This document shows, one piece after another, positions 1 through 57,491 of a stretch of 57,491 bases of DNA; position 1 is the first letter of the stretch; every line of letters begins with the position of its first letter. The notes beneath the pieces were generated by a model that made no database searches, had not been told where the DNA came from, and was given only the letters and a program-made list of their open reading frames with translations. Source of the stretch: Klebsormidium nitens (Eukaryota > Plantae > Klebsormidiophyceae); contig DF237515.1 in the NCBI GenBank assembly GCA_000708835.1, positions 1 through 57,491 on the forward strand, in the 5' to 3' direction. The position numbers were made by a program, and so were the translations under genes.

Positions 1-492
1 TAGACAGGCAGCGTGTGACCCTGTCCAAACCGTCACAGCATCTCCTCGTTCATTGACTTTCGCCATACTTCACTCCCTTCTCCCCCTACGGCTTCCTGAT
101 AGGTCTGCGGTTCTCGGTGCTCCCCCGTTTCTTTGAGGTGGTCCCCCGCTCTCGGTTTTGCCGCTAGATTAGCGCGGTTTACTCCCCCAGTGCGCGTCTC
201 TCATGCGCGGGGTACCTCTGGGCAGCCGGCGTTTGCATCCTGATATCTCCCTCAATCTTTTCCGGCTCTGCGTGGGTCTCGCGCACAGATTCAAAGTTGC
301 TCTCATTTTGGCCGTTGTGAAAGCGCGCGCGGCGGCCGCAAGTCGTCGAGCAGAGATTCAACTTTGGCACCCCCCGGGCCGCCGTGTGAACATGCTCCTC
401 CGCCGTCTGGGAACCGTCCGTGGGGTCGGAGCTAAGCTCGACAACCCCATTTCCCCCGATCCCCTCGTCAAAGATGACGTCTCGAGAGTTGA

Positions 493-1512
493 TTAACTTC
501 CCGTCACGGTCCTGAACGCCTTCGAGTCCGGCTCGTGCCCCACGAATACACATCGCTCGCTCACCGGATCTAGCGTACGCCTCCGCTGCTTGGGGACGTG
601 GTGGAACGCTCGGGCCCCAAAAACCCTCATATGCCCGACATTCGGCTTTTCACAGAAGAAAAACTTCCCAGGAGTCTTCCCATTGGCGTTCACGGGTGTC
701 CGGTTCCGGGTGTAGTTGGCCGTCATCACGGCTTCCGCCACAACTCTTTTGGCAACCCCGAGTCCTCAAGCATTGCCCGGGTCTTTTCCTCCGAAAACTC
801 GGATAGGCCGTTCCGCCGACCCATTCTGCTTGGCGCTATTGGGGGCGGTATTCTCGTCAACCATCCCCTTGCCCCCGAAAACGTCTTTAAAGGCCTTGTT
901 GACGTACTCCTTGCCCCGGTCCGTACGCACCAACTTGAGCTGCTTCCTCGGCTGCAACTCCAACGGGTTGATCACGTGCTCGGTGACCTTGGCCACCTCG
1001 CTCTTCTGCTTCATGAGGACTACAACCGAGAGTTTGCTGTAGTCGTCCAAGAATGTGGCAAAGTACCGGCTTCCCTCTACCGAGGCTACCGGTATTGGCC
1101 CACAGACGTCCATGTAGACTAGCTCAAGAGGCTCCGTGCTCACCGAATCGGCTCCCGGAAAAGGGAGCCTACTTTGCTTCCCCATTATGCAGGGCTCACA
1201 CACCGAGGTTTCAAGCGCCCTAAATGCACTCGGTTCCACCTCAAGCCCTTCCACGACGTCGCCCTGCACCATTTTCTGAAAGTTTTCGTACCCGACGTGT
1301 CCCAACCGTCGGTGCCACAACTCTGCCGTTTCCGGCTTCTTCACGAAGAAGCACGTGTCCTTCGCCGCCCGGTTGACCACATAGACCCCCTTCACTTTCC
1401 GAGCGACAAGGACTACGTCCCCGTCAACCTCAAGCTCATACCTGCCGTTCTCCTTGAACATCACTGACGCAACCTCGGTGGCCTTGCTCACCGAGATCAA
1501 ATTCGCCGCCAC
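493..1512 (-). pseudogene. Copia integrase, broken into two ORFs
   Basis: ORF 766..1512 has the HHCC and DDE core. ORF 493..741 has the C-terminal domain. They are separated by a stop and a frame change. Confidence 0.88.
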
Positions 1513-2515
1513 CCCTGGAACATATCACCTTCTGCAGAGTGACCAGACTTTCTCCGGGTGGTGTCGCACATTGCAGCTCGACAGAGCCGCTCCCCTCTAC
1601 CCATAGGGTTCCCTTGTCCCCGAAGGTAAATTCTCGGCCACTCTTCTTGAACAGTTCGAGGATCTCAAATAGGCTCTTGTCCCCGGTTATATGTTGGGAG
1701 CTACACGAATCGACGAGCCACTCATTGGTCGACACCCCCCTCAATGACGCAAAAGGCCACACCATTGGGAGGTTTTTCCCCCTTCTTTTGCTCCGGTTGT
1801 GCTCCCGCCTATCCGGCTTACTGCACTTTCGGGCAATGTGACCGCACCATGCGCAATTATAGCACTTGGGCCCTTTGCCCGGGCTTTCATCCTTGCCGTG
1901 GACTTTCTCCTTTCCTTTCCGTCCGGCCACATAGGTCACTGCGGGGTCCGACCCACCGCCGCTCTTTTCTTTGGGCGACTTGTAAAACTCTTGCTCATGC
2001 ACCAAAAGCTTCGGCAGAATCGCATCCACCAAGCTAATGGCGCTCTCCGAAGCCTCCAGGATTCTTCTCAGGATACTAAACGTTTTGGGCAATCCTGCAA
2101 GCACGCTCCATGTTAACTCATTTGGCTTCATCTCAAAATTGGTGGCGACCAAGTCCCTGTACAAATCCTTCGCCCGACCAACATATATGGTCGCGGACTC
2201 ACCCGGCTTCACCTTGAGAGAATGCAACTCTTGCCTGAGGTTGCATCTTCTTTGCATTAGTTGTGCTCTTGTAGGTCTTCTCAAGGAAACCCCAAGCCTC
2301 CTTTGCGGTTTTGCACTCCTCAATCGACCCCAAATGGTCTTCAACGTTTAGCCCAAAGATGGACAACGCTTTCTTTGATTGAGTGGGTGCGCTACGGGAT
2401 CCTCAACCCCGTTCCATAGATCCTTGGAAGTCAAAAGAAACTTGATCTTCAAACTCCACGTTCTATAGTTTTCCGCATCCAACTTATCGATGTGGACCTT
2501 GTATCCGTCGGCCAT
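1436..2515 (-). pseudogene. Copia gag/protease region, frameshifted near 2345-2390 and near 1500
   Basis: ORF 1436..2344 carries the CCHC knuckle and protease motif. The gag N-terminus (2515 to ~2390) lies in a different frame. Confidence 0.85.
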
Positions 2516-2666
2516 TTCTGGGATTGGGTTCCCTTTCTCTCTTTCTGACGACCAAAGGTGGATAATTTCCGTTTAGGCTTTCCCTGCCACTTGATTCCCC
2601 TTACGGGCTTTCACAAGTCGTTTAGCTCAAAGAGCATTCATGTGACGGTTGGACGGGTTTCAACGC

Positions 2667-2686
2667 NNNNNNNNNNNNNNNNNNNN
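2667..2686. other. Assembly gap (20 N)
   Basis: Run of 20 N. Confidence 1.
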
Positions 2687-2871
2687 AAAACCCTAAAACC
2701 CTAAAACCCTAAAACCCTAAAACCCTAAAACCCTAAAACCCTAAAACCCTAAAACCCTAAAACCCTAAAACCCTAAAACCCTAAAACCCTAAAACCCTAA
2801 AACCCTAAAACCCTAAAACCCTTAAACCCAAAAACCCTAAAACCCTAAAACCCTAAAAACCTTAAAACCCT
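2687..2871 (+). repeat. Telomeric repeat tract (CCCTAAAA)n = (TTTTAGGG)n, ~23 units
   Basis: Perfect 8-mer array from the gap to ~2821, then variant units (CCCTTAAA, CCCAAAAA, CCTTAAAA) at the inner boundary. The C-rich strand is on plus, as at a left chromosome end. Confidence 0.97.
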
Positions 2872-32674: not shown

Positions 32675-35335
32675 CTATTCAGAGGGCGGCCCTTTCAGCT
32701 CCCCAATCGCTTTTCCCAGCAGCCGGTGGAACAGGCCGGGGTGTTCGCGCTCCAACTTGGGGCACTTTCGGAGAATTCTCAGCGCTACCCCCGGTTGCCC
32801 GACGTCAATCAGATTGTAGACGAGCCGGATCACGTTGGACAGCCGCACCGTGACTCTGTCTTCTAGACTCGCCTCAAACACCGCCACCGCGGCATCCAAC
32901 AACCTCTTCCCGACAAGAAACTGGAACAGGCACTTGTGGAGCCGCGTGGGCGGCCCCTCGTGCGCCACCTGTCCCACCACGAAGCGCCGGTGCTCCTCGA
33001 ACGCGGCCATCAGCGGGATGACGTCACCCTCCCCTTTGCGCAGCTCCGCCTCGAAGAGCGGCGTCGGCGTGTCGATGGCGTAACAGCGGCCCCGCGCGTC
33101 GAGCCAGCGGATGACCTGCCACGCTTCGGCCGTGTCCCCCGCCCGCGCTTGCGCCACCAGCAGAGACTCCAGAGCCACGTCGACTCCAGGTACAGTCCGG
33201 TACGGCAGCCCCGCAGCAGTGACACGTGGCAGCATCGCCACGACCTGCGCCAACGCCTCCCCGGCCTTACTGACGTCACCCGCCTCGAGATGCGCTCGGC
33301 CTTGCTCGAGCAGCTTCCCCCCGACCTTCAGCCGCGCTGCGTCAATTTTTTCAACAAAGGCCGGGCGTCCCGCGCGGTGGTATGCCCGGGCGAGGACTTC
33401 GAAGGTGCGCCCGTGCGGCATGGCCCCGCCGTTGCGAAGGACGGCCAGAAACTCGAGCCCCGTCTGCTCGTACCCGTGCTCCGCGTACTGGGCGACCAGC
33501 GAGTCAAGCATTCTTTCGTTGGGCTTCGCCACGGCTTTCAGGTACACGTCAAGAAGGTATAGCGCCTCGAGAAACTTGCGCTCCTGCGAGAGCGTCTGGA
33601 TCGTCGTTACAAACGGCGCGTAGTTACCTGTCTCGCCCACTAGCAGGGTCGCCCCCACGGCCAGCTCCAACTGCCGCGCATGGATCAGGCTCCTCACGAG
33701 GTCCCTTCCCGCCGACTGCACCTCGTCCAGCGGCAAACCTTTGCCCAGACTCCCCTTGAACGCCGCCACCGCCTCGTCGAACGCCCCCGCTTTCATCAGC
33801 TCTGCCGTCAGCACCTGTTCCGTCCGCATGCGGCTCGCGGGCTCCTCGGGGGGCCAGCAGTCCTGCACCGCGCGCGCCAGCGCAAAGTGGCGCCCCCGAG
33901 CCAAGTACCGGGTCACTGTGGTAATGAGGGCCGACTTCCGGGACACCCGCGACCGCTCCATCTCCATTCCACATGCGACGCTGAGACCCGCTACTAACAC
34001 CTCCCGGTCCAGGGGATCCCCCTGGAACCCCTTTGCGAGCATCCGGCAGGCCCGATCCAGGTGCGCCCACTCACAAAGGCCCCGTTCGACCCGCGCCGCC
34101 AGCTCCGCCCTAACGTCTGCAGTGGCCGGCAGGGACCGCAGAACGTCCAACAGGGCCTCTGCTCCAGCCTGAACATGATCGTCGGAACTGGGGTCCTTCT
34201 CCGAATCGCCAGCCGACTTCGTTGGCGGTGTGATGCTTTCGCGCTCGGCATGCAGAATCCGGACCTGAGTCTCTGCACGGACCTCCCGCTCTCGGAACGG
34301 TTCTGCTGCTACCCGCCTTCCCTGTTGCTTGAGCATTTCTACATCCACCCTCTGTCCTGCGGGCACCACCCCGCTCCTCTCTTCACTCACCAATCTTCCT
34401 TGCTGCGAACGCCTGTCTGCTGTCTCAGCCCCCTTTGAAAACGCGTCTCTGCCCTCCACCTTCCGTTCTTTCCCCCTGATATCCCCTTCAGCCCTGCCCC
34501 TCCCCTCCAATTGCCCAACCGCTGGCCCTCTCCTTTTCGCCTCCGCCCCTCCTTTGTCCTCCACGAGCAAAATTGCCTCCCCTTTCCTTCGCCTGTCTAG
34601 TTGCCAGCTTGCCCCATCCTGTTTCCGTGACCAGCCGCCCAAGACAAACTGCCCCGTCAGCTTAAACGCCCGAATCCTCTCCTTTTCCACCTCATCCTGA
34701 AACACCCACCTTGACGTGGGGCCGTCTTCAAACCACTCCACCTCGTTCTTCATTGCTAGGTAGTCTCGCACACCCAGCCCACGGGGACGAACCCCTCGAA
34801 AGCCTACGCCAGCCATTGGCTCCCAGTCAAAGACTTTCTCCGTTTGCAGTCCTGCTCCCCGCTTCTGTGGTTCCCGGCTTGCTGGCACTTCAACTGACTG
34901 GGGGGATGCAGATGAAGCCCTGGCTCCTCTCCCGCTGGTCGCCGGACGCTCGTGTTTGGCCCCAGACCAAACTCGCTCTGCCGTCTGCATTTCCGAAGTG
35001 TCTCCTTGAGCTCTTTTCCAGCCACCCTCCGCCAATCTTTCTCCGTTTTTGGCACGCCATCCTCTGCCGTTCATGTCGATCTCGGCCTCCGAAGCGCCCC
35101 CAAAATCGTGCTCCACAGCTTCGGCATACTCCAAGGCCTGGCCAGAGAAGCACCTGGCCTGGGGCCTGCAATGTCCACTACAAATCAGCATCAGTGCAGC
35201 TGTAAGCCTGTTCTTTCCGACAAAGTGGCGGGCCCCCTCTTGCGTTCCTCCGGATGAAGCCCTGCCCGGCCTAGCCCCAGATTGCAATCCTAGACAACTA
35301 AAGCTCCAAACGAATTGTTCGAAATCCTGGTACAT
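32675..35335 (-). CDS. Intronless PPR-like helical-repeat protein (886-aa ORF), probably organelle-targeted
   Basis: Single long ORF. A charged, disordered N-terminal part is followed by degenerate ~35-aa helical repeats (PNERMLDSLVAQYAEHGYEQTGLEFLAVLRNGGAMPHGRTFEVLARAYHRAG; LESLLVAQARAGDTAEAWQVIRWLDARG). The exact start and any extra exons are uncertain. Confidence 0.7.
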   Translation of the reverse strand: MYQDFEQFVWSFSCLGLQSGARPGRASSGGTQEGARHFVGKNRLTAALMLICSGHCRPQARCFSGQALEYAEAVEHDFGGASEAEIDMNGRGWRAKNGERLAEGGWKRAQGDTSEMQTAERVWSGAKHERPATSGRGARASSASPQSVEVPASREPQKRGAGLQTEKVFDWEPMAGVGFRGVRPRGLGVRDYLAMKNEVEWFEDGPTSRWVFQDEVEKERIRAFKLTGQFVLGGWSRKQDGASWQLDRRRKGEAILLVEDKGGAEAKRRGPAVGQLEGRGRAEGDIRGKERKVEGRDAFSKGAETADRRSQQGRLVSEERSGVVPAGQRVDVEMLKQQGRRVAAEPFREREVRAETQVRILHAERESITPPTKSAGDSEKDPSSDDHVQAGAEALLDVLRSLPATADVRAELAARVERGLCEWAHLDRACRMLAKGFQGDPLDREVLVAGLSVACGMEMERSRVSRKSALITTVTRYLARGRHFALARAVQDCWPPEEPASRMRTEQVLTAELMKAGAFDEAVAAFKGSLGKGLPLDEVQSAGRDLVRSLIHARQLELAVGATLLVGETGNYAPFVTTIQTLSQERKFLEALYLLDVYLKAVAKPNERMLDSLVAQYAEHGYEQTGLEFLAVLRNGGAMPHGRTFEVLARAYHRAGRPAFVEKIDAARLKVGGKLLEQGRAHLEAGDVSKAGEALAQVVAMLPRVTAAGLPYRTVPGVDVALESLLVAQARAGDTAEAWQVIRWLDARGRCYAIDTPTPLFEAELRKGEGDVIPLMAAFEEHRRFVVGQVAHEGPPTRLHKCLFQFLVGKRLLDAAVAVFEASLEDRVTVRLSNVIRLVYNLIDVGQPGVALRILRKCPKLEREHPGLFHRLLGKAIGELKGPPSE

Positions 35336-45452: not shown

Positions 45453-48400
45453 ATGACGCGAGCAAAGGACGGCCCGAACCAGGGGACCATCTCGTGGCAT
45501 TCTTCTCGGGCGGTCCTTGGGCTCAATTTTGACCCCGCTTCAGGGGGGCGACCCAACGGCACTGCTCACAAGGCGCCATGGTCGCCCCCCTGCACGGTCC
45601 GCGAGCGAGAAAAGCATGGCATGCACAAGAACAGTATGTATAATGGGGGAGGGAGTGGGGTAAGAGATGAGCTGGGGGTAAGAGTGGGAGCTGGGGGGGC
45701 GGTTACAAAAGAGGGCAAAGAGGGGGGGAAGCAGGAAATGCGGTTTACCAGGTTGGACCATCAAATTGGAAGGAAGATTGGGGGGAGGTTGTACTTGCGA
45801 GCATCTGACAGCTTGGTGGGTTCCCAAATTCAAGACTTTGACCGGACTTTATTGTTGTGGGGGTAAAAGCCTTGGTTGTAGCAATCATGCGTCAGAGGCC
45901 GACAATGCTGTCATATTCAAAGCTTCACTGAACTTTCAGTGCTGAAAACGGGGTCGATTGTAATGCTGTCGAATGCTAGTCCTGGTCCTCAACTCCTAGA
46001 ACGCCTCATGCGTGCTCCTTTTCCAGCCAAACTGAAGGGGTGCAAATTAGGCAAGGAGCCTAGAGCAGCCTCCTCCAGTAACTGGAGCACGACTTTCCCC
46101 AAAACTCTGCAGCAACAAACGGTGAAGCTGGGGGTAGAATTTTCTTATACGATCCCCTAGGTCAGGCTAGTTAAGATGGAAGACCATTTTTGAGAGGCTC
46201 TTAACCCCGGAATGCAGAATCTGAGCGGGTAAAAGCTGCTTACCTTACACGAAGCAACCCCAAATATCCGCAAGCGACTCTTTCCCACACTTTACCCCTC
46301 AGCTATCAGACCTTCTATGGTTCCTTCAGGTGCACCTGCGGAACACATTTGGGAGCATGGACCCTGCCGGGGAGGGGCGCCTCGACTGGCAGAAGATTCA
46401 GGAGGGTCTGCGACAGTACCGGGTAGAGCTCACAGCAGAAGAGGGGCGGCGCGTGCTGGACAGACTGGATGCTGATGCTACGTAAGTGCACCTTTCTGTT
46501 GTTTGGGGGAATCGTGGAAGGTGTGTTACTGACTAAGCATGACCTTTGAAAAGCCCTCAGCAATTGGATGCGTGGGTAATTTCAAAGGTGTCCTTACGGT
46601 AGGCATAAAGGCGGGTCCTGAGGCTCGAAGTGTGCAAACCTGAAAAGACATTGCCATGTATGTAGAGCCTTTTTTTATGGACGCCCTTGGAGCAAACCAG
46701 GCTTTTAAAAGACGTTTGATAAGAAATCGTGGCAACTCTTTTCGGGTCAGACGTACTGCAAACTTCACCAGGATGGTTACGAACAGCTTCTTAGATTGTT
46801 TGAGCGTCCCGTGCAGCGGTCGGGTGGATTACAACCGGCTGCTGACGATCTTCGCGGAGGGCACGCCGGGCAGCCGCCCGCGCACGGCCAGCAACGTCAT
46901 GCTGACGACAGCGCCGTGGGACCCGCTGCCCAGGAACGTCAAGGTGGGTGCGCCGATGCACTGGGGTGATCTTTTCAGAGCGTGAATGACGTAAGACTTC
47001 TGAGAGTTTCTGAGGCTTCTACGCGTGCTGTGAACAAGCCCAGAAGCAACGCCGTCCAAAGTCCTCCAAAGACAAAGATGCGGGCCTCTGCTGGCAATCG
47101 ACGATAACAAAAAGACGTTGAGATCACGTGCTTGATTCGCCTCACATTGTTTCCGTCATTCACTTTGACTTATTCGCTTTTTTTGGTCTGCCTCATCAAG
47201 CCGGTTTGACATGCCCCGTCACTGTCGCAGGCTCTCAGCCTCTAAGTACTTGCATTTCTTTCTTCCCGTTTCGCAGCCCGCCACCCGGTCAGGCTACAAT
47301 CTGCCGCTGCGAGACCGGCAATTGTACCATGTAAGTTTCCGGATATTCCAACCGCACAAAGATTGACCCGCAACTCACATAGAGGACCGATAATTCACTT
47401 CAACCGAAAGGTTCTAGTCCGTAGAATGGCAACGAACAGCTCAGGTCCTCTTAGATGATAGCTCCGCACAATTTGTAGTTCCGCACATATCATCTGCCAT
47501 CAAGTCGCTCGTAGGCAAACCTAGGCCTTCTCGCCCCTTCGAGACTCCACTCCTTTTCGGTAACCCAAATCCACGCCCGTCGCCTTTTTTCAAGGGATTA
47601 CCCGGTATCACGGGTTCTGGCGGGCAATTTGATGCAATTCGGCGCCTCAGGCTACAGCGGCGTTCTCTAAAGTCAGCGCCGCTGACGTTTACCTCGAAAC
47701 TCCAAGAAGGGTGCCCACCCCGTAGTTTGAGAGCCGGCTTGACAACCCAAGACGAGGACATGTGGGGGCCGTAGGAGCGGTAGAAGCTTTATGATCCTTC
47801 ATTCTTGTATACAGGCAACGGCGGCTGTGATTGAGCGCCGCGCAAACCGGTTACGTATCCTGCTGCGGCGGCACGACCCGGGGCGGACTGGGCGCGTCAG
47901 TGTGAATGGGCTCCAGCAGGGGCTGGCAGCGCTGCGGTACAAGCTTTCGGAAGAGCAGGTTCGGAGTTTTCTCACCATGGCCAAGCAGAGGGATCTCGAG
48001 CGCGGGATCGACTACGAGCGGGTGAGTGAGAATGCGCCTCTGGCTGCGCATTGCCGTTGCATGCGTGGTTGTTTCTACTCCGCAGAAAAGAGTCAAACCT
48101 CTTGAAGGACGTCCTTTTAGAACATCTTTTTCCTATTTGTTTGCGAGTCCATGATAATCAGCAATTGGAGCACTTGGAGTGCCGCCTACCCTTACTCTTT
48201 CTCTCAACGTTCACCAACAAAGACAACCTTAAAGGCGTCAAGTGCTTTGCGATCTTTGCTCCTGAAGGTGTGGTGCGTTCATTCGTTTAGCATATCATTG
48301 TCTGCAGCTGGTGAGCTTGTTTGACAACTTCGAGGCGGGCCCGTCTTCGAGCGCGACGGGCGCCGCGCCCACAGATCGTTCACCGGAAGAAAACGCGCGC

Positions 48401-51340
48401 GCTGAGAGCTCGCGAGCGCGCGCGCTCGCAGCGGACCTGGCCCAGGGGAAAGTCGGCCAGATACTGCGGGAGAAAGTGGCGGAGGGGAGGAAAGAGAAGA
48501 TCATGCAGGTAAGCGGCAACGCTTTCTCCCAAATTGCGGGTTTGCTACACGAAGAGACTGAGGCCCGGAGAAGTCGGAGAGGTTCTCTAGCAGACGGAAT
48601 GATATGTCGGCGTCTTTGCTCAGTAAATCGAACTCTCAATCTAAGCTGTTTGGAAAGAAACCTCCACGAGTCGACAATTGCTTCGGGAAGTTCTTGCTCT
48701 TGCTTCTCGAAGTTCAAGTTCCAAAATTAGACTCAATTACGCAGAAGGAATCAGGACCCGATCCGCGGTACCTGTATGCAGATCTTCCGCCGCCACGACA
48801 TGGACGACGACGGCGCGTTATCGCTGCGCGAGCTGCGCCAGTCGATGGGGGCCCTGCTGCCGGAGGGGCAAGAACAAACAGCGCGAGATCTCGCCGGGAG
48901 CGAGGACGACCGCGTGGATTACAAGGCCCTGGTGGCTGTCGTCATTCGCGAGGAAGACGGGGGCGCGCGAACGGGGCGGCAAACGGGGATGGGTCAGGCG
49001 ATGGGCTTGCAGGCACGTGGCACGAGAATCGACTTTCACACCCTAAATGTAACAGGCGTTTGAAAACCAGAACCGGCATATACAAGCCAGACTTTGATAA
49101 ACGGTGGCTCATTTCGGGAGGCAACTGCAGCGCATACATCCTTGATTGCTTTGCCTGCGATTAGATCATGTATCTGCTACACGAGCCTCCAAAAAGCAAA
49201 TCTGGTGTACCAGTTGTTCAATTTCTGCATTCTGACGGTTTCGAATCGTGGATGCAGAGCGCGCTTGTGGATCCGATTGAGACTTCGTGGACGCGGGCGG
49301 CGATGCGCGCGCGCACAACGGAACCAATGCAGAGACCGCGTGAGGGCGGCGGGTAAGACCGCGCACAGAAAGCGTCTGTTGTCATTGCGCGAAATGTTCG
49401 AGTCCGCTTCTCCGCGGAAACCAACTTTTTAGACATTTTGTGGTGACCTGCGAAAGCCGGCTCCTTTACATAAGCTAGCGAAGGAAAATAATAGGACAAC
49501 TAAAATTCAACTCAAGCGACCCGATCCAGCTCATTGGAGCAGGCAGGAGGTCATCTTGGTCAGCTTACTTCATTCCTTTCCTGTCCAAAAGTCAAATTAA
49601 GCGAGTCGTTCCTTTCAATCGCTGCTGCCTTCATCGAAACCTTTGCTCGCTCGTGCTTCGCAGGCTCTTTTCCGGGGAAGCTCCGTCCAGTCCTACTGCA
49701 TCAGTCCCTCAAACAAGCCGTCGTTCCGTCGGCGTCCGGCCGGCCACAGCGCTCTCGGCTTCTTCCGTCCGGCGTACGGATTCCGGTGCCTCGAACGCGA
49801 ACGAAACGGAGAATGGCGCTCCTTCTCCCGGGAGCCTTCACCGGCCGTCGTCAGTGTCTGCGTTTGCCGCGCCGAGGAGTCGGTTTGCGTGGCATCCGCC
49901 CCCCCGAGACACGTCAGCAGTCATACGCCCGACGCCGGTAAGCGCCTGAACGCCGAGGAGGAGACACGTGGCACATCCAATTCGTTTGCACGCCGTCACG
50001 CCCACGTCATCCGATCGAACTAGACGGACGCGTTGGAGTTGTCCTCAGAATGTCAAATGGTTTTCGCTGCAAACAAGCTTCTATGATTAGTCTTTGCTCT
50101 GAAGTGGAGCGACATCAATCGCAGCAAGCCAGCATTTTCAAGACAGACTGGTACTGTTGCGAGTCATCAAAGAGGTGCAACAATCAGAACGTCCGTCACA
50201 CGAAGCGTGCCGCTTCTGTGCACCTTGTTTCGCTTTTGACGAGGGGCTTTCAACTCTCCTTCTACAACGCGATTGCTCGAACAGGCCGTTTCTTTGATCA
50301 ACCAGTTTCAAACCCTGAATTCTCACCGATCTTCTCGTCAGGGCTCCCCGGGGTACTGCTCCGACCTGGACCGCCTCCAAAGTGTAAATACGGTCCGGGC
50401 GCAGAGCGCCACGCCCGGCTCGCACTCCACCTTCTCTCAGGTAGGGCGGCCAGTCACACCACTTGATCCTGCAACAACGTGAACGGATGAAAGTCATACC
50501 TTGCGAAAATGAACCAATGAGACAAAGCGAGGACCGTACATCTATAATGATATGCCACAGTTTGATCCTATGCGATTGAAGATATATCGCATGAGGCATT
50601 TCTCAAGTCCTTCCCACCGCGCAGGCTTTGAGTGGCAGCGGGCGGTCGCCCTCCCGCAAGCGCGCCATCAGCGCGGGCGTGCTGCAGGAGCTGGCGACCA
50701 CCAATGACACCATCGCAGCCGCCAAGCAGGCGGCGCGCATCACGCGGCTCACCGGCCAGAAGCAGAGGTGAGCCCCAGTATGACGTCACGTTTGCACGCC
50801 CGGGAGAACGTCACAGATGACGGATGCGGAAGTTTGTCGGTTGCCGTGCGTTTTGTTAGCAGTTCTTAGCAGTCGTGACGAAGAGGCGCATTCACCCGTA
50901 CTCGTCGTTTGGATCAGGGGGTCGTGAATAGAAGTTGATGATCGACCTTAAACCTCGGCTGCGACAAAAAACTTGAAATTATGTCCGTTGCGCCGCTTTA
51001 CCTCCGGTCTCAGCTCTTAACTTTTCGTCTACAACGAATGGTCTAAAATTTGAGACGGTATTTCACGTCGATCCCACAACGCCTGTGAGCCGGAGCTAAA
51101 CCGGTGTGAAGAGCTATAAGCCCCTTCTCTACGTCGGCTCCCAAATTTCCTTTGGCTTCCGGAAAATGTAGTCCCGCAGCAACTGGTCAGGCTAGCCAAT
51201 GTATCCGTGACACGTGGCGTTACTGTGGCAGGTACATGGAGATGAGTCGGGCGACCGAGAACGAGCGCGCGGCGGCGGCCACGACCGGTTCTCAGACGCT
51301 CTTTGGAGTCGACGGCGGGCCATCATACGTGGCCGCGTGA
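45453..51340 (+). CDS. Uncharacterised multi-EF-hand protein with S/R/P-rich disordered C-terminus, up to 14 exons
   Basis: Supported exons: 46330-46481, 46817-46943, 47277-47330, 47815-48021, 48308-48508, 48782-49012 (GC donor), 49258-49352, 49664-49937, 50342-50440, 50625-50767, 51232-51340. Tentative 5' exons 45453-45633 and 46027-46121 keep phase. EF-hand-like loops: DPAGEGRLDWQK, DADATGRVDYNR, DPGRTGRVSVNG, DMDDDGALSLRE. Confidence 0.75.
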
Positions 51341-52830
51341 GGGCAGTTGGGACACAAACTGGCAGATACGAAGTCTCTTCGGTCGACCAATAACTGACGA
51401 CCTCTTGACCAGCTGAGAATATAAGGCACTGGGATTGGATGGCGGTGGATGACAGTTCTCTTTGAGGAGTCTTGTTACAGCTGCGAAAGCCAGGTCTTCT
51501 GCCAATGGGCGAGATGTGGCCCGGCTCGGGTCCGGCAAGGCGATTGCAGCTCAAAGCCAAGAGTGCGCGCGCGCTCGCGCAAATGATGATGGCCGGTGTA
51601 CGAGCTTGCACATCTGGTGGGCCCCACCCGGTGACCACCGCATGTCCTCCCTCCTTCGTGGTCCACTTTCTGCAGATGTTACTACGTACGGTCAACCGTA
51701 CACATGAATTTTCCAACAAAAAGCTGTATACAGAGCCTGGTATGTACGAAGCTAGCGGCCCGCAAGCTAAGCGGCCGTGTGGTGATACGAGTCAGTTGTT
51801 GAATTGGCGGCACGAGCCACTGCTGCACTGCTGACCGTCAGTGCGAGGCTGTTCAAGTTGCCCGGCCACAGCTGCACGACTGCTAATGCAGAATCCAACA
51901 GAAACCAACATCAAGCCCAGCGGTGACAGCCCGCCATCGGCCGTCTCTCCTGCGGCATGCTTCAGTGGCCGCCACGCCCGGCAGTACGGCGCCACAGGCT
52001 TTCTGCTTTTATTTGACATCGATCAATACGTATCAGACGTGGATTGTTTGCCGCAAAGAGTTAGAGGTGCTACTAGTGATAAGCTTTTTCAATGATGCGC
52101 GCGCGGCGCGCTTGCTCAGACCGCTCAAGCAGCTTGACTCGATCAAGCATGGCTTTAAAATTTAGTATATAACGTGGGCAGACTCAGACGCGCAGCCATA
52201 AGTTTAGGCGACTAGAACCATACGCGAGCACTTCTTCAACTCATGCATGTATCTTAAGTACTCAGTACCACTTGCAAGCTCATTACTTGTGTTTCTTTCA
52301 GTCAATTCTACAAGAACAAATTGGGGCGGCGAGGTTGGCAGCTGGTTACAACTCCATCAATTGCGTCGCAGCAGAACCTGGCTACGTACACATGATGTCA
52401 CTGGGCATTGGTTTGCAGTCAACAATCAAGTCGTATGCAACCAGATTCTCAACGGCGTTTGTCGTAAGAGCCGCAACACTTGACATTGAATAGTGATCAT
52501 GACGGTCGGCGGATTTGGGATCGTGGAGTCTATCATCACTTTAGGCTCGATCCTGCAACATACAGACGATGCTCGAATACGAAGTCCGACGTGACTTTGA
52601 TCGGACTGGCCGAAAGACTAAACCGTTCTTTGTCACCACACTGAAGACGCTGCTAGCTTCATTGGTTGTCAACTATTTGGCATGTCTAACCCACACCGAT
52701 ACCTCTTCACTTCGATGCACCTACCAAAGTTAACACTTTGTCCTGGTGCATGGCCTTCGAAAAATCGTCACGCCAAGCCCGTGAACCCTGGCCGCAATCC
52801 ATACTCTTGTCGCACAAAACGCAGCGCCGT

Positions 52831-54322
52831 TCACTGGACGTACGGACCGGGCGTGTGCGCTTTGATTGCGGCAGCAATGGTGCCGTCCAGCCCATTCTTG
52901 TTGGCTTCGATGGTCTTGGCCTCAGCGGAGGCGATGTCCATCAGCGTGAATGCCAGCGAGTCAATGATCCCCTCATACGAGCGGAGCGCGACGGCGACGG
53001 GCTCAATGATGATGGAGGTAGTTGAGAAGAGGCCCGCCTTGCCGGTCAGGATGTTGAGCAGAATCTGGTGCATGCGCACCAGCTCGCGGAACGCGTCCGC
53101 GACGGGCTTTGCGTCGGAGTCCGAGAACGACTTGGTTCCTTGTGCCCCCTGCAATGGTGCGCCGACAATATCGGGCTTAGTAAACCCTGGTTAAGCGTGA
53201 ATAAAGATCCGAGTGTCTAAACCCTAGAGCTGATCCGCACTTGACTTGACCGCATATTCATTCGGTTGCTATTGGTCTGAAAGTTGGAGAAGGTCGGACT
53301 TTGGGGTTTTCTACCAGGTTAGTAAATGACCGGATGGCTTTTCGAAGTGTTCGCATCAGCAGAATCTGTGTCCCTTCTGTGGCCTCCAGCCTCTGCCGAG
53401 CAATCATTGTCTCAACAGTCGCTTCAAAGAAAGCATGCCAGTCAAGCAGGGATAAGGAGTCTGGTAGTCTAAATGAAACGCAAGGACGGGGCAACTCAAT
53501 CTGAATCAAACCAAAACTCAGATTGATCTGGCACGTTAGCAATGGACACTGTGGGGCAGTACTCACTATTGATGATTCTTTTGAAAAAGAATCAACAAGT
53601 TGTGCTTGAGATACTGTTTCCGTGTTCAAGTCGGTCACTTCTTTCCCTTTCCACATTCAAGCTTCTATCTGGAGTAATATTAATGACTGTCTAGGCTGAA
53701 TCAAATGATGTCCACCAAGAGGTGAGTAATTTGGGTAGTGCTTGTGTGATTCACTCGACAAGCAAGGTAGAGAAGAACCTTCAAAAAAGACGTTCCCTTG
53801 AGAGCACAGAACTTCAAGAACGTAAGAGAACCTTCCAGCAAAGCCTCGAAGAAGAAAGCATCCGACTTGCAGGAAGCTGATGAGGTGATTTACACCCACG
53901 AGCGGACCTCCTGAGTTGACGATCTTTAGGCCACTGCACCAACTCATTCTCTGAACCCACCTTCAACATCCCATGACAAGAGGGGAAACATTGGAAGACG
54001 CTTTCAAACACCTGGCTGAACCCTTCTGGAAGCCCAGACGTCTAGACAGAGAAGCACATACCGCGAGGATATGGGTCAAGGTTGCAACAATATCGTTGAA
54101 GCCGTTGATGATGATGGGGTACGGGCCCAGGCCAACGACGATCAGCGGGCCGTTGATGAGGCTGATCGATTGAGCGGGGTTCTGTAGAGCTTGGCCCTTG
54201 ACGGTGATTGATTGAATGTTAGCAACCAGCTGTTGGGGCGTCACGGAAGCAAATGTGGTAGGAGCGCACAGCAGGAGCAGTGCGGAGAGGGCCATCAGCC
54301 GGAGGGCAGCGGGGGAAGCCAT
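52831..54322 (-). CDS. Secreted ~192-aa protein resembling fungal UVI-1-family proteins, 2 coding exons
   Basis: Exon 1 54322-54062 (261 nt), a 913-nt GT-AG intron, exon 2 53148-52831 (318 nt), joined in phase 0. The signal peptide MASPAALRLMALSALLLLCAPTTFA is followed by SVTPQQLVANIQSITVKGQALQNPAQSISLINGPLIVVGLGPYPIIINGFNDIV..DAFRELVRMHQILLNILTGKAGLF..IEPVAVALRSYEGIIDSLAF. The family assignment is from recall only. Confidence 0.8.
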
Positions 54323-54730
54323 TGCACCTGGGGGAAGGGAGGAAGGGATGCACTTGTTAAGGACAGGTTGTAAAAGACAAAGCATTTCTTGGAGAAAGGA
54401 TAGGGAAACAGAGTGACTAAGAGCACATTGTTGAGAATCAAGCTCCTCAACGCTTTTGTGACCATAAGCCAAGGATTGTCAACAAGGAGACAAGAACAAG
54501 ACTAATAGCTACACGCTTTTCGTGTTTCTTTTGACCAGGGTTGCTCTGAAAGCTGCCATGGAGACTTGTATAAAAAACAAGAGCACAGATAGTAAGCAAG
54601 AACAGGATTGGTAGAATCATCTATCAGCACAAGATTGTGAGGGGTTCTTGAGTTTTTGCAGGCCTAGCTTCATCTGACCCGCTCTCAGCATTCACTTAGA
54701 ACCTTCTCTGTTCTAGGCTTGCTGCTCTGG

Positions 54731-54810
54731 ACTAAGTGAACATGTCAACAGAGGTTATGCAAGTGACCTCACTAAGTGAACATGTCAACAGAGGTTATGC
54801 AAGTGACTTC
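54731..54810 (+). repeat. 40-bp tandem duplication (1 mismatch)
   Basis: actaagtgaacatgtcaacagaggttatgcaagtgacctc followed directly by the same unit ending gacttc. Confidence 0.95.
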
Positions 54811-55081
54811 AGCAAAGACTCAAAAGCCTATGGCAAGCATTCCATTGAGGCAAACACTCTCTCTCCTCAGATTGCCATTGTTCTATGTTTGGCATCCAAA
54901 GTCGAAATCAGATAATGTGGCATTGCTTGAGTACTGTGATTTCAACGCACTACGGCGATACTTTACATATGCTAGGTGGTCTTGGCTATCGTACTGCAGA
55001 CCTGCTGCGCTTAGGCGAGTGGGATGTTCCATCGATGATTTTGGATCTGCAGAGACGTTATTTGACGGGCTCGCACAGATT

Positions 55082-55101
55082 NNNNNNNNNNNNNNNNNNN
55101 N
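55082..55101. other. Assembly gap (20 N)
   Basis: Run of 20 N. Confidence 1.
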
Positions 55102-55129
55102 AAAATAAATTGAATTGAATTGAATTGAA
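55102..55129 (+). repeat. AATAAA + (TTGAA)4, probable 3' tail of a non-LTR retroelement hidden in the gap
   Basis: aaaataaa-ttgaa-ttgaa-ttgaa-ttgaa starts exactly at the gap edge. Confidence 0.5.
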
Positions 55130-55834
55130 GGTGGTTTTTGATTATGCTGAGCTTCTGAATGATGCTGATTCAAACAAGCGGTTGCAGAAAGAGCAGTGCG
55201 ACAGGTTCAACAGAAGAATCTCAACAATCAACCGTGGCAGGGCTTGCTGTGATCCACCATGCTTATTATGATCATTTCAAATTCCGAACAGCACCATTCA
55301 TGAACAAGGACGAACAAAGCAAGATGGAAAATCAGCAGCCAATTTGAACAGACTTACAAAGACTTTTCCAGATGGTGCGGAGCAGGCTGTTGCGACACAT
55401 TCTTTACAATGTCCATTCGGCACCATTTGCATCGCCGCTTTTGACAAATTACAAGAAACAAAGACCTTGCATGCTACTAACATCCACAAAGTGATGCAGC
55501 ATTTGAGCATCCGACAAACCCGCGACTGAGCTTACCTGGAACGAAGACTGGCTTGCAGAGGTTCTTGCACTGCAGAGGCTGCTGGTGGTACGCGCGGTTG
55601 GTCAGCTGCTGACAGGGCTGCCGGGGGACTGTGGGTGACAGTGGCGCCCATGCTCTTGAACTTTGAACTAGGTACCCAGGTAAAGCAAGTGTAAGTTATA
55701 ATGCAAGCACTGAGCAGGTGTTCGGGCACCGATCAGCAAGAGTCGCAAGATTGCTGGCTTGCACTGGTGAGGAATCAGGTGGCAAAGAAGCGCCGGTACC
55801 CAAGGAATCCGACCTTGATTAGGTACCGTAGCCT

Positions 55835-56129
55835 TTAAAGAGGGCGTCCTGGGACCCGGAACGCCTGACGTCAGCTACGTACTGTGAAATTTAATCGCGC
55901 GGCGATTCTGCCCGCGTGACGCTGATTTTGAAAACCGGTGTGAGTACGGTCTGCGCGGCGTGCGGAAAAAGGAGAAATTTTGCCCTCGAGTCTCGACCGA
56001 GTTTCGATCCCTCGGTTTCTCGGAGAGAGACGAGCGCACTTCCCATTTGCGCTGGAGATTTTCGTGCGGCCGAATTGGATCGGGAACTCACGAGTCGGGA
56101 CAGTACATATAGACTGACGCCCTCTTTAA
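55835..56129. mobile_element. Non-autonomous TIR element flanked by TTAA (Kolobok/T2-MITE-like), 287 bp between the TTAA sites
   Basis: TTAA-AGAGGGCGTC at 55835-55848 and GACGCCCTCT-TTAA at 56116-56129 form a perfect inverted match. Subterminal similarity (cgtcag..gtactgt) is present at both ends. No coding capacity. Confidence 0.7.
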
Positions 56130-56887
56130 TAGGTACAGGCACTTGGGCTTTGAGATTGTGATCGGCTGGAATCATGTCCAGATTCCAATACGGTGCCGGT
56201 ACCTGAGCACTGCAGCTAAAATTAAGGTACCGTATCCAGTTACTTGATTACATTTTCTTGTCATTTTCCTGTCAAGACTCACAGCTAGCTACCTAGGGAG
56301 GTACTGTAGTCTGTACCTGGGTGTACCAAGGTACCTAGTAGGTAGGTACCTAGTTCTAGAGCGTGCGCACACAACCCGAGCAGCTTGCACCGTGCACGTC
56401 TTGAGACTTGAAGTTTGAACCCGTTCAGTGGCATTGGGCACTGCTCCGACTCAGGAGTCAGCGTGCCTTGGTCCGACCGTACTTGGGTGATGTGCAGGGC
56501 AATCATTGCTCAATCAGTACTAAAGCTGACTCTCGTCGTATGTCCCATGGACTAGCCGCTTATGTTCCTTGAAGTTCATATTCACGGTCCAATTTTTGCA
56601 CTGGAGTGCCAGTATTGCATACACGAGACCAGAAATAACTTGACCGCGTATGAGGTCGTCTGTTACCTACCGGAAGGAGGCTCCGGCCCTGCGGACATGT
56701 ACGGATAGTGACCGAGTCATGACGTGATCAACGACCGTTAGGTAAAAGATGGATAATAAAAAAGAATGAAGAATGAAGAACTGATCGGACGGTGTGCAAA
56801 GCCCGTAAAAGGCATACAAGGGTCCACTTCGGTCCACGTCAACGACCCAATCCATTCCCCCAATGATATTACGATGTGTATGATATA

Positions 56888-57093: not shown

Positions 57094-57491
57094 CACATGA
57101 AACAAGCCACAAGCGTCTCGGTCGCGCCTGGTCGCGCCGGCCGTGCACCATTGATATTGTATATTCTGCCGCCACGACATCTATAGGAATGACGTGGCGA
57201 TTCTGCACCGTTCGATGCGTACCTGTCGCCATGGCCTAACGGCTATCTACCTGCATTTGACCGTTAGGACTGCTGCTTTCGCCTTGCGAGCATTTGCTTA
57301 TGTTGTCTTGCATCTTGTGACTGGAGCTACGGCTCACCTATAAAGGTGGACTTCTCCACCGTGTAAGTCCTCATTCCTGGTTTCCAAGTTTGAGGCATCC
57401 AATCTCTAGCAAGTTTCTCAACTCTCGAGCTCCGCTCTTCCCGCTAAGCTCCCTACTAGTGTATAAGTCTCCAATTTCCTTGTGAAATTAG

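Follow-up and report, generated by a model that had tools for sequence, protein, structure and literature searches.

The window analysed here is the whole of scaffold DF237515.1 of the streptophyte alga Klebsormidium nitens, 57,491 nt in length. The gene under study, KFL_005660100, lies on its minus strand. It has two coding exons separated by one long intron, and it encodes a 192-aa protein that begins with a signal-peptide-like segment (Table 1). An earlier note made from the sequence had proposed this two-exon model, which is confirmed. The coding intron has a GC content of 46% vs 60% for the CDS. Exon 1 starts 5 nt 5' of the ATG, at 54327, after a pyrimidine-tract acceptor (...cccttcccccag, followed by gtgcaATG) that had been read as the end of a 5'UTR intron. 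This acceptor is real; L007, a spliced transcript of a related Klebsormidium, is spliced there. L007 aligns with the window in three blocks, 55609-55534, 54330-54077 and 53139-52556 (the last being its nt 348-910), and both the 5'UTR intron and the 913-nt intron are spliced out in the relative's mRNA. A transcript of the same family is also present in K. subtile. The 5'UTR intron contains a tandem duplication of 40 nt, in two copies, at 54731-54811.

Table 1. Features of the KFL_005660100 locus, in window positions.
Feature	Position	Strand	Details
Telomere-type array (CCCTAAAA)n	2687..2870		on the gene's uninterrupted stretch, ~50 kb away
Convergent neighbour, 696 aa	45453..51340	+	faint EF-hand matches; linkage to the UVI-1-like gene conserved
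Segment collinear with scaffold DF237798.1	46189..56861		~10.7 kb
Probable 3'UTR	52556..52830	-	extent inferred from orthologous transcript L007
Coding exon 2	52831..53148	-	105 aa + TGA at 52833-52831; PF17615 profile positions 107-168, 47.7 bits
Coding intron	53149..54061	-	913 nt, phase 0, GT-AG (GTATGT...TTGCAG), after codon 87
Coding exon 1	54062..54322	-	87 aa, ATG at 54322; PF17615 profile positions 10-90
Signal-peptide-like segment	54322-54248	-	codons 1-25, in exon 1
5'UTR intron	54328..55535	-	annotated model and L007 alignment; contains 20-N gap 55082-55101
Upstream exon	55536..55628	-	annotated coding, most likely 5'UTR; L007 nt 1-74 on 55609-55534
First micro-exon, 10 nt, doubtful	57223..57232	-	from annotation, with annotated ATG

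The publicly annotated product of KFL_005660100 is 228 aa long, through the addition of the two upstream exons at the end of Table 1. The micro-exon found no support among the orthologous transcripts. Since the ORFs of these transcripts begin at MASPA, the 192-aa protein is the likelier product, and the publicly annotated start codon is corrected here.

The coding exons lie on an N-free stretch, 2687 to 55081, that also holds the telomere-type array, a CCDC39 exon, an RPN6 exon, a TRAPP gene and the EF-hand gene. A TTTTAGGG-type telomere has been reported for Klebsormidium, including K. nitens (PMC3622300). The distance of about 50 kb from a telomere tract claimed in the earlier note stood, as did the contiguity of the coding exons with plant-type genes. 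The statement that there was no gap was inexact, as a run of 20 N interrupts the 5'UTR intron 760 nt 5' of the ATG; collinearity with the paralogous scaffold continues through this gap. The ~10.7-kb collinearity with DF237798.1 is a segmental duplication that carries both the UVI-1-like gene and its EF-hand neighbour. Between the duplicated segments the UVI-1-like exons are 70-76% identical and the EF-hand exons 88-92%. Linkage of the two genes is therefore repeated in the paralogous scaffold, and it is found again in an independent contig (L008, SRR23617307) that holds both. The TE relics noted next to the gene were not reproduced: no TE Pfam domains or dispersed repeats were found in 51.3-57.5 kb, and a copia gag/pol fragment at 1439-2344 was the sole trace of a TE seen.

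The intron at residue 87 is present in all four genomic Klebsormidium copies, among them the paralogue KFL_008490030 and those of two other Klebsormidium-like genomic contigs. The fungal UVI-1 genes instead have two introns of 55-76 nt, at positions that map to Klebsormidium residues 69 or 109 and 150. The residue-87 position is absent from the fungal set. The GC3 of the gene is 0.77, its neighbours range from 0.68 to 0.83 and that of Bipolaris is 0.72, and GC3 is uninformative as a sign of foreign origin. Together, the new intron, the 5'UTR intron and a GC3 within the range of the neighbours make the structure and composition of the gene host-type.

The two exons match Pfam PF17615 (C166 / UVI-1) collinearly, over profile positions 10-168 of 171. 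The score is 80.7 bits against a gathering threshold of 36.7, and the K. nitens paralogue scores 117.8 bits. The match to PF12296 (HsbA), at 28.3 bits, is below the gathering threshold of 33.5, with 31.5 bits for the paralogue and 37.6 for the K. subtile orthologue. On these scores the protein appears to be a relative of HsbA and not HsbA proper. About 100 named UVI-1 proteins of Pezizomycotina share 45-57% identity with the window protein. One of them is Q9P338, the UVI-1 of Cochliobolus miyabeanus (Bipolaris oryzae), and the family named in the earlier note was thus the right one. The two sequence blocks quoted there as typical are those best conserved in the family alignment; in the form QALQxPAQSI..INGPLIV.G.GP(F/Y)P and AFRE.VR.HQ.LLN.L.GKAGLF they are shared by the fungal and algal proteins. 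The window protein keeps 30 of 34 near-invariant family positions; F110L, P132S, G135I and Y185H are the changes.

The top 120 matches include only two kinds of non-fungal name, Klebsormidium and one mislabelled 'Zoysia' record. A phmmer search of 1.84 billion representatives returned only 410 matches. Among the best 150 of these, 149 had a usable best match, and the nearest labelled relative was fungal in 141; the remainder were the mislabelled 'Zoysia' (1), Klebsormidium-like (3) and bryophyte-type (4). Only about 30 of the matches beyond those listed were given a name. Other algal names are absent from the 120 and 150 matches listed, which come from databases searched without a taxon filter and in which most metagenome and Logan matches carry no taxon. 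The 'Zoysia japonica' and 'Quercus suber' records are fungal sequences filed under plant names. A metatranscriptome protein, P0231, is 40% identical and is nearest to Klebsormidium.

The AlphaFold2 model of the protein is a single helical bundle predicted with high confidence (pLDDT 91.3, pTM 0.83); only the N-terminus ahead of the bundle has low pLDDT. A search of PDB sequences with exon 2 gave no match, and the structural relatives emerged by fold search only. The best Foldseek matches are Afmp4p of Aspergillus fumigatus with bound palmitate or arachidonate (TM 0.88) and the ligand-binding domains LBD1 and LBD2 of Mp1p from Talaromyces marneffei (TM up to 0.89). For 5j5k, 5ecf and 5fb7 the Foldseek probability is 1.00, at TM 0.85-0.89 for the predicted model. 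The matched structures (5ecf, 5e7x, 5csd, 5fb7, 5j5k and 5j5l) are helical bundles whose central cavity is occupied by palmitic or arachidonic acid. Residues 7-21 of the protein are strongly hydrophobic, with a mean Kyte-Doolittle value of 1.97, and are followed by a cleavage-like TFA-S; the signal segment was judged from this hydropathy and site. The C-terminus, ...KAHTPGPYVQ, extends 8 residues past the last helix, and no S/T-rich linker, GPI-anchor signal or hydrophobic C-terminal tail is present in the protein sequence.

The main tree has 74 rows and was built under LG+C20 from an alignment of only 188-190 columns. The Klebsormidium sequences, seven distinct members on a long stem of 0.38-0.49, form a clade with support of 100/100, nested behind four starred branches within a Pezizomycotina clade. 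They belong to a 42-row UVI-1 clade (98/82*) and group with the UVI-1 proteins of Sordario-, Dothideo-, Leotio- and Orbiliomycetes. In the AU test, a placement of Klebsormidium outside all 42 Pezizomycotina rows, a group defined only after inspection of the tree, was rejected with p = 0.021. The sister pairing with Triangularia/Podospora is weak (85/64), and neither it nor the sister-group test given below singles out a donor class. With the host linkage and host introns, the nested position bears out the fungus-to-alga transfer that had been proposed for this chromosome. KFL_005660100 is probably a Pezizomycotina UVI-1 gene that moved to a Klebsormidium ancestor and was then domesticated, and its product is predicted to be secreted and lipid-binding.

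The transfer could be real and the copy in the window nevertheless be drifting, as a weakly constrained or decaying duplicate with no function of its own. The dN/dS among three Klebsormidium copies is 0.67-0.78, so the constraint is weak; the value of 0.74 to the closest orthologue is not separated from 1 in what is a rough comparison from proportions, not a computed test. The four changed near-invariant positions, the PF17615 score below that of the paralogue and the lower identity of the UVI-1-like exons than of the EF-hand exons between the duplicated segments point the same way. This copy however retains its ORF, its two splice sites and its signal peptide intact, its model is confident and its own orthologue is transcribed and spliced, as seen in L007. 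All seven Klebsormidium sequences, spread over a protein tree about 1 change per site deep, are intact. Secreted surface proteins, moreover, often evolve fast. Decay of this copy is thus unlikely, although it is the alternative that fares best.

The opposite direction would be a transfer from a Klebsormidium-like alga to an early Pezizomycotina fungus. A topology that unites all the fungal UVI-1 rows and makes Klebsormidium their sister group was not rejected (p = 0.33), and the tree has no independent root. The combined UVI-1 and Klebsormidium clade is nested, however, among Lecanoromycetes, a Eurotio/Sordariomycete 'galactomannoprotein' group and Basidiomycota, and placing Klebsormidium outside those further fungal lineages was rejected (p = 0.021). 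HsbA-type proteins are reported to form a fungal family that is conserved and extends to Mucorales (PMC13537970), and among the named matches listed no other alga has the gene. A transfer from alga to fungus is accordingly very improbable.

The same domain family occurs in the bryophytes Marchantia (Mp4g06545/06550 and Mp5g00760), Sphagnum, Physcomitrium (A0A7I4AQQ5 and Pp3c14_22870) and Ceratodon. The claim that the family is unknown from plants was therefore too broad, although this related tandem-domain clade is phylogenetically separate. The bryophyte proteins share the Pfam domains and an early land-dwelling streptophyte host with the Klebsormidium protein, and they too look fungal in origin. 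They differ in having mostly 2-5 tandem domains and about 28% identity to the window protein. One moss HsbA-like protein is documented at the proteome level (bioRxiv 10.1101/2022.10.21.513210). The UVI-1/HsbA family is unmentioned in the Marchantia HGT papers and in a 2025 HGT review.

The presence of the domain in these plants could be taken to mean an early streptophyte gene, inherited vertically or acquired once and lost elsewhere. A first tree, with Marchantia repeats only and thin fungal sampling, disfavoured a joint Klebsormidium and bryophyte clade just marginally (p = 0.073). In the better-sampled set that took its place the bryophyte domains group with Pezizomycetes (Morchella, Sphaerosporella), beside Basidiomycota, whereas Klebsormidium stays with UVI-1, and the joint clade was rejected with p = 1.2e-7 and a log-likelihood 131.7 lower. 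Pairwise scores agree: a Marchantia repeat matches fungal UVI-1 at 70-80 bits and the Klebsormidium protein at only 52 bits, and the Klebsormidium protein itself matches fungal UVI-1 at 150-175 bits. As the bryophyte clade is separate, it does not rescue vertical descent, and common ancestry of the two plant groups of genes is slightly less probable still than a transfer out of the alga.

Least probable of all is fungal contamination, with the gene on fungal DNA or on a chimeric scaffold of the K. nitens assembly, for which the identity to fungal proteins, the misfiled 'Zoysia' and 'Quercus' records and the 20-N gap might speak: the coding exons are N-free contiguous with the telomere array and algal genes, the 913-nt and 1.2-kb introns differ from the fungal ones in length and position, structure and neighbour recur on another scaffold of K. 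nitens as well as in independent assemblies, several Klebsormidium lineages carry the gene, and a contaminant should fall at shallow depth within one fungal genus, like the Zoysia record, rather than on a long stem with seven members, so that the early judgement that contamination was unlikely holds.

Comparison with characterized proteins bears on what the algal product may do. The closest in type are the UVI-1 proteins of Bipolaris oryzae and its Pezizomycotina orthologues, which are likewise single-domain proteins of about 185-205 aa with a signal peptide, and within or beside which the Klebsormidium clade branches. Their identity to the window protein is 46-49%. They differ in host and in intron structure. 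Near-UV induction, as described by Kihara and co-workers, is reportedly the property behind the UVI-1 name. A UV or desiccation role for the Klebsormidium protein, which had been proposed, would be pure conjecture; the predicted fold points instead to the binding of lipids or of a hydrophobic ligand.

The predicted fold superposes on Mp1p and Afmp4p with target-normalised TM of 0.85-0.89 and rmsd of 2.1-2.8 Å. Sequence identity to these proteins is however just 10-16%. Mp1p and the Afmp proteins are mannoproteins of the cell wall whose tails are rich in Ser/Thr and GPI-anchored; the Klebsormidium protein has no such tail. HsbA of Aspergillus oryzae (PF12296) belongs to the same superfamily and is the same type of secreted helical protein, to which the weak Pfam match is collinear. 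It adsorbs to hydrophobic polyester and recruits the cutinase CutL1 (PMC13537970). A partner enzyme of this sort is neither known nor linked in the Klebsormidium locus. The fungal fruit-body lectins of bryophytes and ferns, which are fungus-to-plant transfers (PMC11906373), are a further parallel, as secreted or defence-type fungal proteins fixed in an early land plant lineage. They represent another protein family, and the recipient here is a streptophyte alga and not an embryophyte.

The preferred reading, a fungal gene domesticated in the alga, can be put as a sequence of events. A UVI-1 gene (PF17615, HsbA/Mp1p superfamily) would have passed from a Pezizomycotina ascomycete into the nuclear genome of an alga ancestral to the Klebsormidium lineages sampled. 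It would then have shed its short introns of fungal ancestry, gained the long host-type intron after codon 87 and the 5'UTR intron, and acquired a host-like GC3. The gene would have been copied with its EF-hand neighbour in the ~10.7-kb segmental duplication and would have diverged into at least two paralogue groups. Its product, of 192 aa, would carry a cleavable signal peptide and lack an anchor, and its mature part is predicted to be a single Mp1p/Afmp4p-type helical bundle. Bundles of this type enclose a long-chain fatty acid or a like hydrophobic ligand, and in HsbA adsorb to hydrophobic surfaces. The protein may reach the filament's wall or surface by secretion and there bind lipids or hydrophobic material.

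A wider reading, tentative and on balance doubtful, is that the HsbA/UVI-1 domain was captured twice independently: by the Klebsormidium lineage from a Pezizomycotina fungus with UVI-1, and by bryophytes from a fungus that was Pezizomycetes-like or related, with tandem multiplication of the domain in the bryophytes.

The literature search found no paper on KFL_005660100 or on the UVI-1 family in Klebsormidium; large HGT catalogues beyond that search may list it. Fungus-to-plant transfers are known, but well-supported cases in streptophyte algae are few, and these bear on how the relatives of land plants became equipped for life out of water. The present case is unusually clean, as the fungal family is identified, the gene structure is host-type, the linkage is conserved and several recipient species carry the gene. 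Klebsormidium and the bryophytes are both streptophytes exposed to air, and they form a natural pair for asking if a fungal surface or lipid-binding protein is useful on land. If the two captures are true, and if both genes were kept for managing a hydrophobic or lipid surface layer, they would exemplify convergent adaptive gene transfer linked to a terrestrial way of life.

Klebsormidium nitens is a filamentous streptophyte (charophyte) alga of aero-terrestrial habit. In its NIES-2285 assembly (GCA_000708835.1), the UVI-1-like gene lies on the 57,491-bp scaffold DF237515.1, which the window covers in full. The gene consists of two coding exons and specifies a 192-aa product, exactly as the earlier note had described. 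The whole protein scores 80.7 bits with PF17615 ("C166", unknown function; cut-off 36.7; profile positions 10-168 of 171) and a weak 28.3 bits with PF12296 (HsbA), under the cut-off of 33.5. A profile run against 5.8 billion proteins gave 383 matches. The names among the 120 matches listed are Pezizomycotina (Sordario-, Dothideo-, Leotio- and Orbiliomycetes), Klebsormidium (two K. nitens genes and K. subtile EP00243) and one "Zoysia japonica" record; many of the Pezizomycotina matches are named UVI-1, including Q9P338 of Cochliobolus miyabeanus (Bipolaris oryzae). Identity to the fungal proteins is 45-57% local and 42-52% global, and the two motif blocks that the note gives as typical of UVI-1 are the best-conserved blocks of the family. 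The note's UVI-1 assignment was correct. Sequence and phylogeny place the gene in UVI-1/PF17615; by predicted fold the protein is kin of HsbA and of the Mp1p lipid-binding domains. Classification as HsbA proper was rejected, the protein being under the Pfam threshold, as was classification as an Mp1p-type mannoprotein.

Two family members carry flowering-plant names, P0041 (QDQ70830.1, "UVI-1 [Zoysia japonica]") and P0187 (POE62934.1, "Quercus suber"). The Zoysia record falls on a short branch beside Paramyrothecium, among Sordariomycetes. Both are probably fungal sequences labelled with the host plant's name.

Features of scaffold DF237515.1 (window positions)
Feature	Position	Strand	Basis
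UVI-1-like gene, start codon (ATG)	54322	minus	sequence reading
Coding exon 1, 87 aa	54062-54322	minus	sequence reading
913-nt phase-0 intron, GTATGT...TTGCAG	53149-54061	minus	sequence reading
Coding exon 2, 105 aa + TGA	52831-53148	minus	sequence reading
Public model KFL_005660100 (P0001), 228 aa: extra 10-nt micro-exon	57232-57223	minus	annotation
Public model KFL_005660100 (P0001): extra exon before MASPA start	55628-55536	minus	annotation
CCDC39 exon-sized ORF (axonemal ruler protein), PF24161, 81.9 bits	14278-15141	minus	Pfam match
Copia-type gag/pol fragment, on 2666-bp piece	1439-2344	minus	
886-aa uninterrupted ORF, the window's longest	32675-35335	minus	ORF

The spliced transcript L007 (ERR4329572) of a related Klebsormidium, with 73% protein identity to the window protein, aligns in three blocks (55609-55534, 54330-54077 and 53139-52556). 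All five orthologous ORFs on transcript-sized contigs start with MASPA. Because of these starts and the three-block alignment, the extra exon before MASPA in the public model is real, but most likely 5'UTR rather than coding. The alignment also confirmed the proposed 5'UTR intron (54328-55535), which holds a tandem duplication of 40 nt x 2 (97% match, 54731-54811), and would extend the 3'UTR to about 52556. Both K. nitens paralogue models (window; L002, scaffold DF237798.1, 10001-10426) open at far-upstream ATGs, adding 36 and 24 5'UTR-like residues. Both annotated N-termini are thus probably wrong and mask the signal peptide.

Residues 1-25 are signal-peptide-like, with Arg at position 8 and TFA|S after a hydrophobic core (residues 7-21, mean Kyte-Doolittle 1.97). 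The mature part has no cysteine, N-glycosylation sequon or C-terminal tail. The signal-peptide segment MASPAALRL.ALSALLLLCAPTT (window 54248-54322; orthologues P0002-P0009) is near-identical across all Klebsormidium copies, among which identity of the mature protein is only 55-73%. Signal peptides usually vary more than the mature protein; the Klebsormidium pattern is the opposite. Nucleotide identity between the window and L007 is 86% in exon 1 and 77% in exon 2.

The gene is not a contaminant. First, the stretch 2687-55081, which includes the coding exons, has no N; it opens with about 23 units of CCCTAAAA and also holds an exon of CCDC39, an RPN6 exon, and TRAPP and EF-hand genes. Pezizomycotina generally have TTAGGG telomeres. 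The array of the window is of the TTTTAGGG telomere type, which is reported for Klebsormidium including K. nitens (Fulneckova et al., PMC3622300). The claim of gap-free contiguity with plant-type genes stands for the coding exons and fails for the 5'UTR intron, which has a 20-N gap at 55082-55101. This sole gap near the gene is spanned by the orthologous L007 transcript and by the collinear paralogous scaffold. Second, window 46189-56861 is collinear with DF237798.1 9520-18264, a segmental duplication of ~10.7 kb that includes the UVI-1-like gene (paralogue KFL_008490030) and its EF-hand neighbour. Third, L008, a 5.1-kb genomic contig from a separate sample (SRR23617307), carries a UVI-1-like gene beside the 3' end of the EF-hand gene, so that the linkage, whose confirmation the note had called for, is seen independently. 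The gene structure agrees; GC3 (0.77 against 0.68-0.83 in neighbouring exons) is not discriminating by itself. No TE relics, which the gene had been said to adjoin, were found around it.

Other features of the scaffold were noted. CCDC39 is not known from non-flagellate Dikarya; its presence is consistent with the flagellate zoospores of Klebsormidium and marks the scaffold as non-ascomycete. The (CCCTAAAA)n array (2687-2870) has the orientation of a left chromosome end, and the scaffold runs 2666 bp past it across a 20-N gap (2667-2686). In window 1-2870, either scaffolding has wrongly joined a piece onto a telomere or the telomere array is interstitial. No Pfam family matches the 886-aa ORF at E <= 0.001.

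Run exhaustively against 1.84 billion cluster representatives, phmmer gave just 410 matches, the second-best being a Marchantia polymorpha protein of 899 aa with 5 tandem domain copies. In a tree of 74 rows and 188 columns (LG+C20+F+G4), the seven Klebsormidium sequences are monophyletic (100/100) and sit deep within the Pezizomycotina UVI-1 clade. The domains from bryophytes join Pezizomycetes (Morchella, Sphaerosporella; 97/88), adjoining Basidiomycota, and between the two groups lie four branches with strong support (100/97, 100/97, 98/82 and 98/84). Vertical descent through green plants, which the note named as a refutation of the transfer, was rejected: bryophyte members exist, yet a single clade of Klebsormidium and bryophytes has a log-likelihood 131.7 lower (AU test, p = 1.2e-7; p = 0.073 with an earlier, thinly sampled set). 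The 42 Pezizomycotina rows comprise UVI-1, a Lecanoromycete pair and a "galactomannoprotein" group; with Klebsormidium forced outside this whole set, which was picked after the tree was seen, the AU test gave p = 0.021. A position sister to all sampled fungal UVI-1 was not rejected (p = 0.33). Given the tree placement and these tests, the source of transfer is the stem or crown of UVI-1-bearing Pezizomycotina, no finer than that, and the donor class is left unnamed.

For 149 of the top-150 representatives there was a usable best match, and the nearest labelled relative was fungal in 141; the remaining eight were one mislabelled "Zoysia", three Klebsormidium-like and four bryophyte-type. No further algal lineage appeared among these 149, most metagenome entries being without an organism name. 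Among labelled sequences, Klebsormidium comes closest to the 192-aa metatranscriptome protein P0231 (L009, JGI 3300030743), with an identity of only 40%; P0231 could be another non-fungal holder of the family or come from a divergent fungus.

Fungal UVI-1 genes (Bipolaris oryzae, Colletotrichum truncatum, Orbilia oligospora) have two introns each, of 55-76 nt, at Klebsormidium residues 69 or 109, and 150. These are missing from all four genomic Klebsormidium copies (window, paralogue, L006 of JGI 3300060284, and L008), which have in common a single long intron of about 720-1030 nt after residue 87. The long intron was therefore gained after the transfer and before the Klebsormidium copies diverged. 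The reading of the gene as a domesticated fungal gene is thus supported by the clade within Pezizomycotina UVI-1, the host linkage and the host-type introns.

The family is evolving fast, since pairwise dN/dS is 0.67-0.78 (window gene, paralogue and ERR4329572 orthologue) and the window copy has changed at 4 of 34 near-invariant positions (F110L, P132S, G135I, Y185H). Between the duplicated segments the UVI-1-like exons are 70-76% identical and the EF-hand exons 88-92%; the transferred gene therefore evolves far faster than its co-duplicated neighbour. The window copy may be relaxed or shifting in function. Against relaxation, however, none of the seven known Klebsormidium sequences is disrupted, their signal peptide is nearly invariant, and the L007 orthologue is transcribed and spliced.

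A confident AlphaFold2 model from a 91-sequence alignment (mean pLDDT 91.3, pTM 0.83) is all-helical after the signal peptide. It has long helices at 29-45, 67-89, 97-128, 132-159 and 161-184, with short helices (47-51 and 55-62) between the first two. The top Foldseek matches in the PDB are to structures with bound palmitic or arachidonic acid: Afmp4p of Aspergillus fumigatus (5j5k, 5j5l; target TM 0.88 and 0.86, rmsd 2.4-2.6 Å) and the two ligand-binding domains of Mp1p from Talaromyces marneffei (TM up to 0.89). In these domains, which the window protein resembles by predicted fold, the fatty acid is held in a central hydrophobic channel. The same five-helix cavity is described for Mucor HsbA proteins, and Aspergillus oryzae HsbA adsorbs to hydrophobic polyester and recruits cutinase (PMC13537970). 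The window protein would be secreted and, because it has no GPI-type tail, soluble; at the filament wall it would bind a long-chain lipid or a hydrophobic surface. We infer secretion, ligand binding and any role, with function read from the fold. The protein may have a part in UV or desiccation responses, the sole pointer being the name given to the founding gene of the family in fungi.

Fungus-to-plant transfer is a known type of event, one example being the fruit-body lectins that bryophytes acquired from fungi (PMC11906373). No literature was found on the window gene, on the UVI-1 family in Klebsormidium or on the family as bryophyte HGT, though large HGT catalogues may list it; a moss member appears solely as a proteome match annotated HsbA. 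The bryophyte members (P0127, P0280-P0299, P0318, P0321) form a separate HsbA/C166 subfamily, mostly with 2-5 tandem domains (five in Marchantia Mp4g06545), found in M. polymorpha (several loci), M. paleacea, Sphagnum compactum, Physcomitrium patens and Ceratodon purpureus. Its nearest fungal kin are Pezizomycetes, and Morchella importuna P0310 groups with Ceratodon proteins inside the bryophyte clade (91/73). The subfamily looks like a second, independent inter-kingdom transfer, in one direction or the other. Two air-exposed streptophyte lineages may have separately acquired one fungal surface-protein family.
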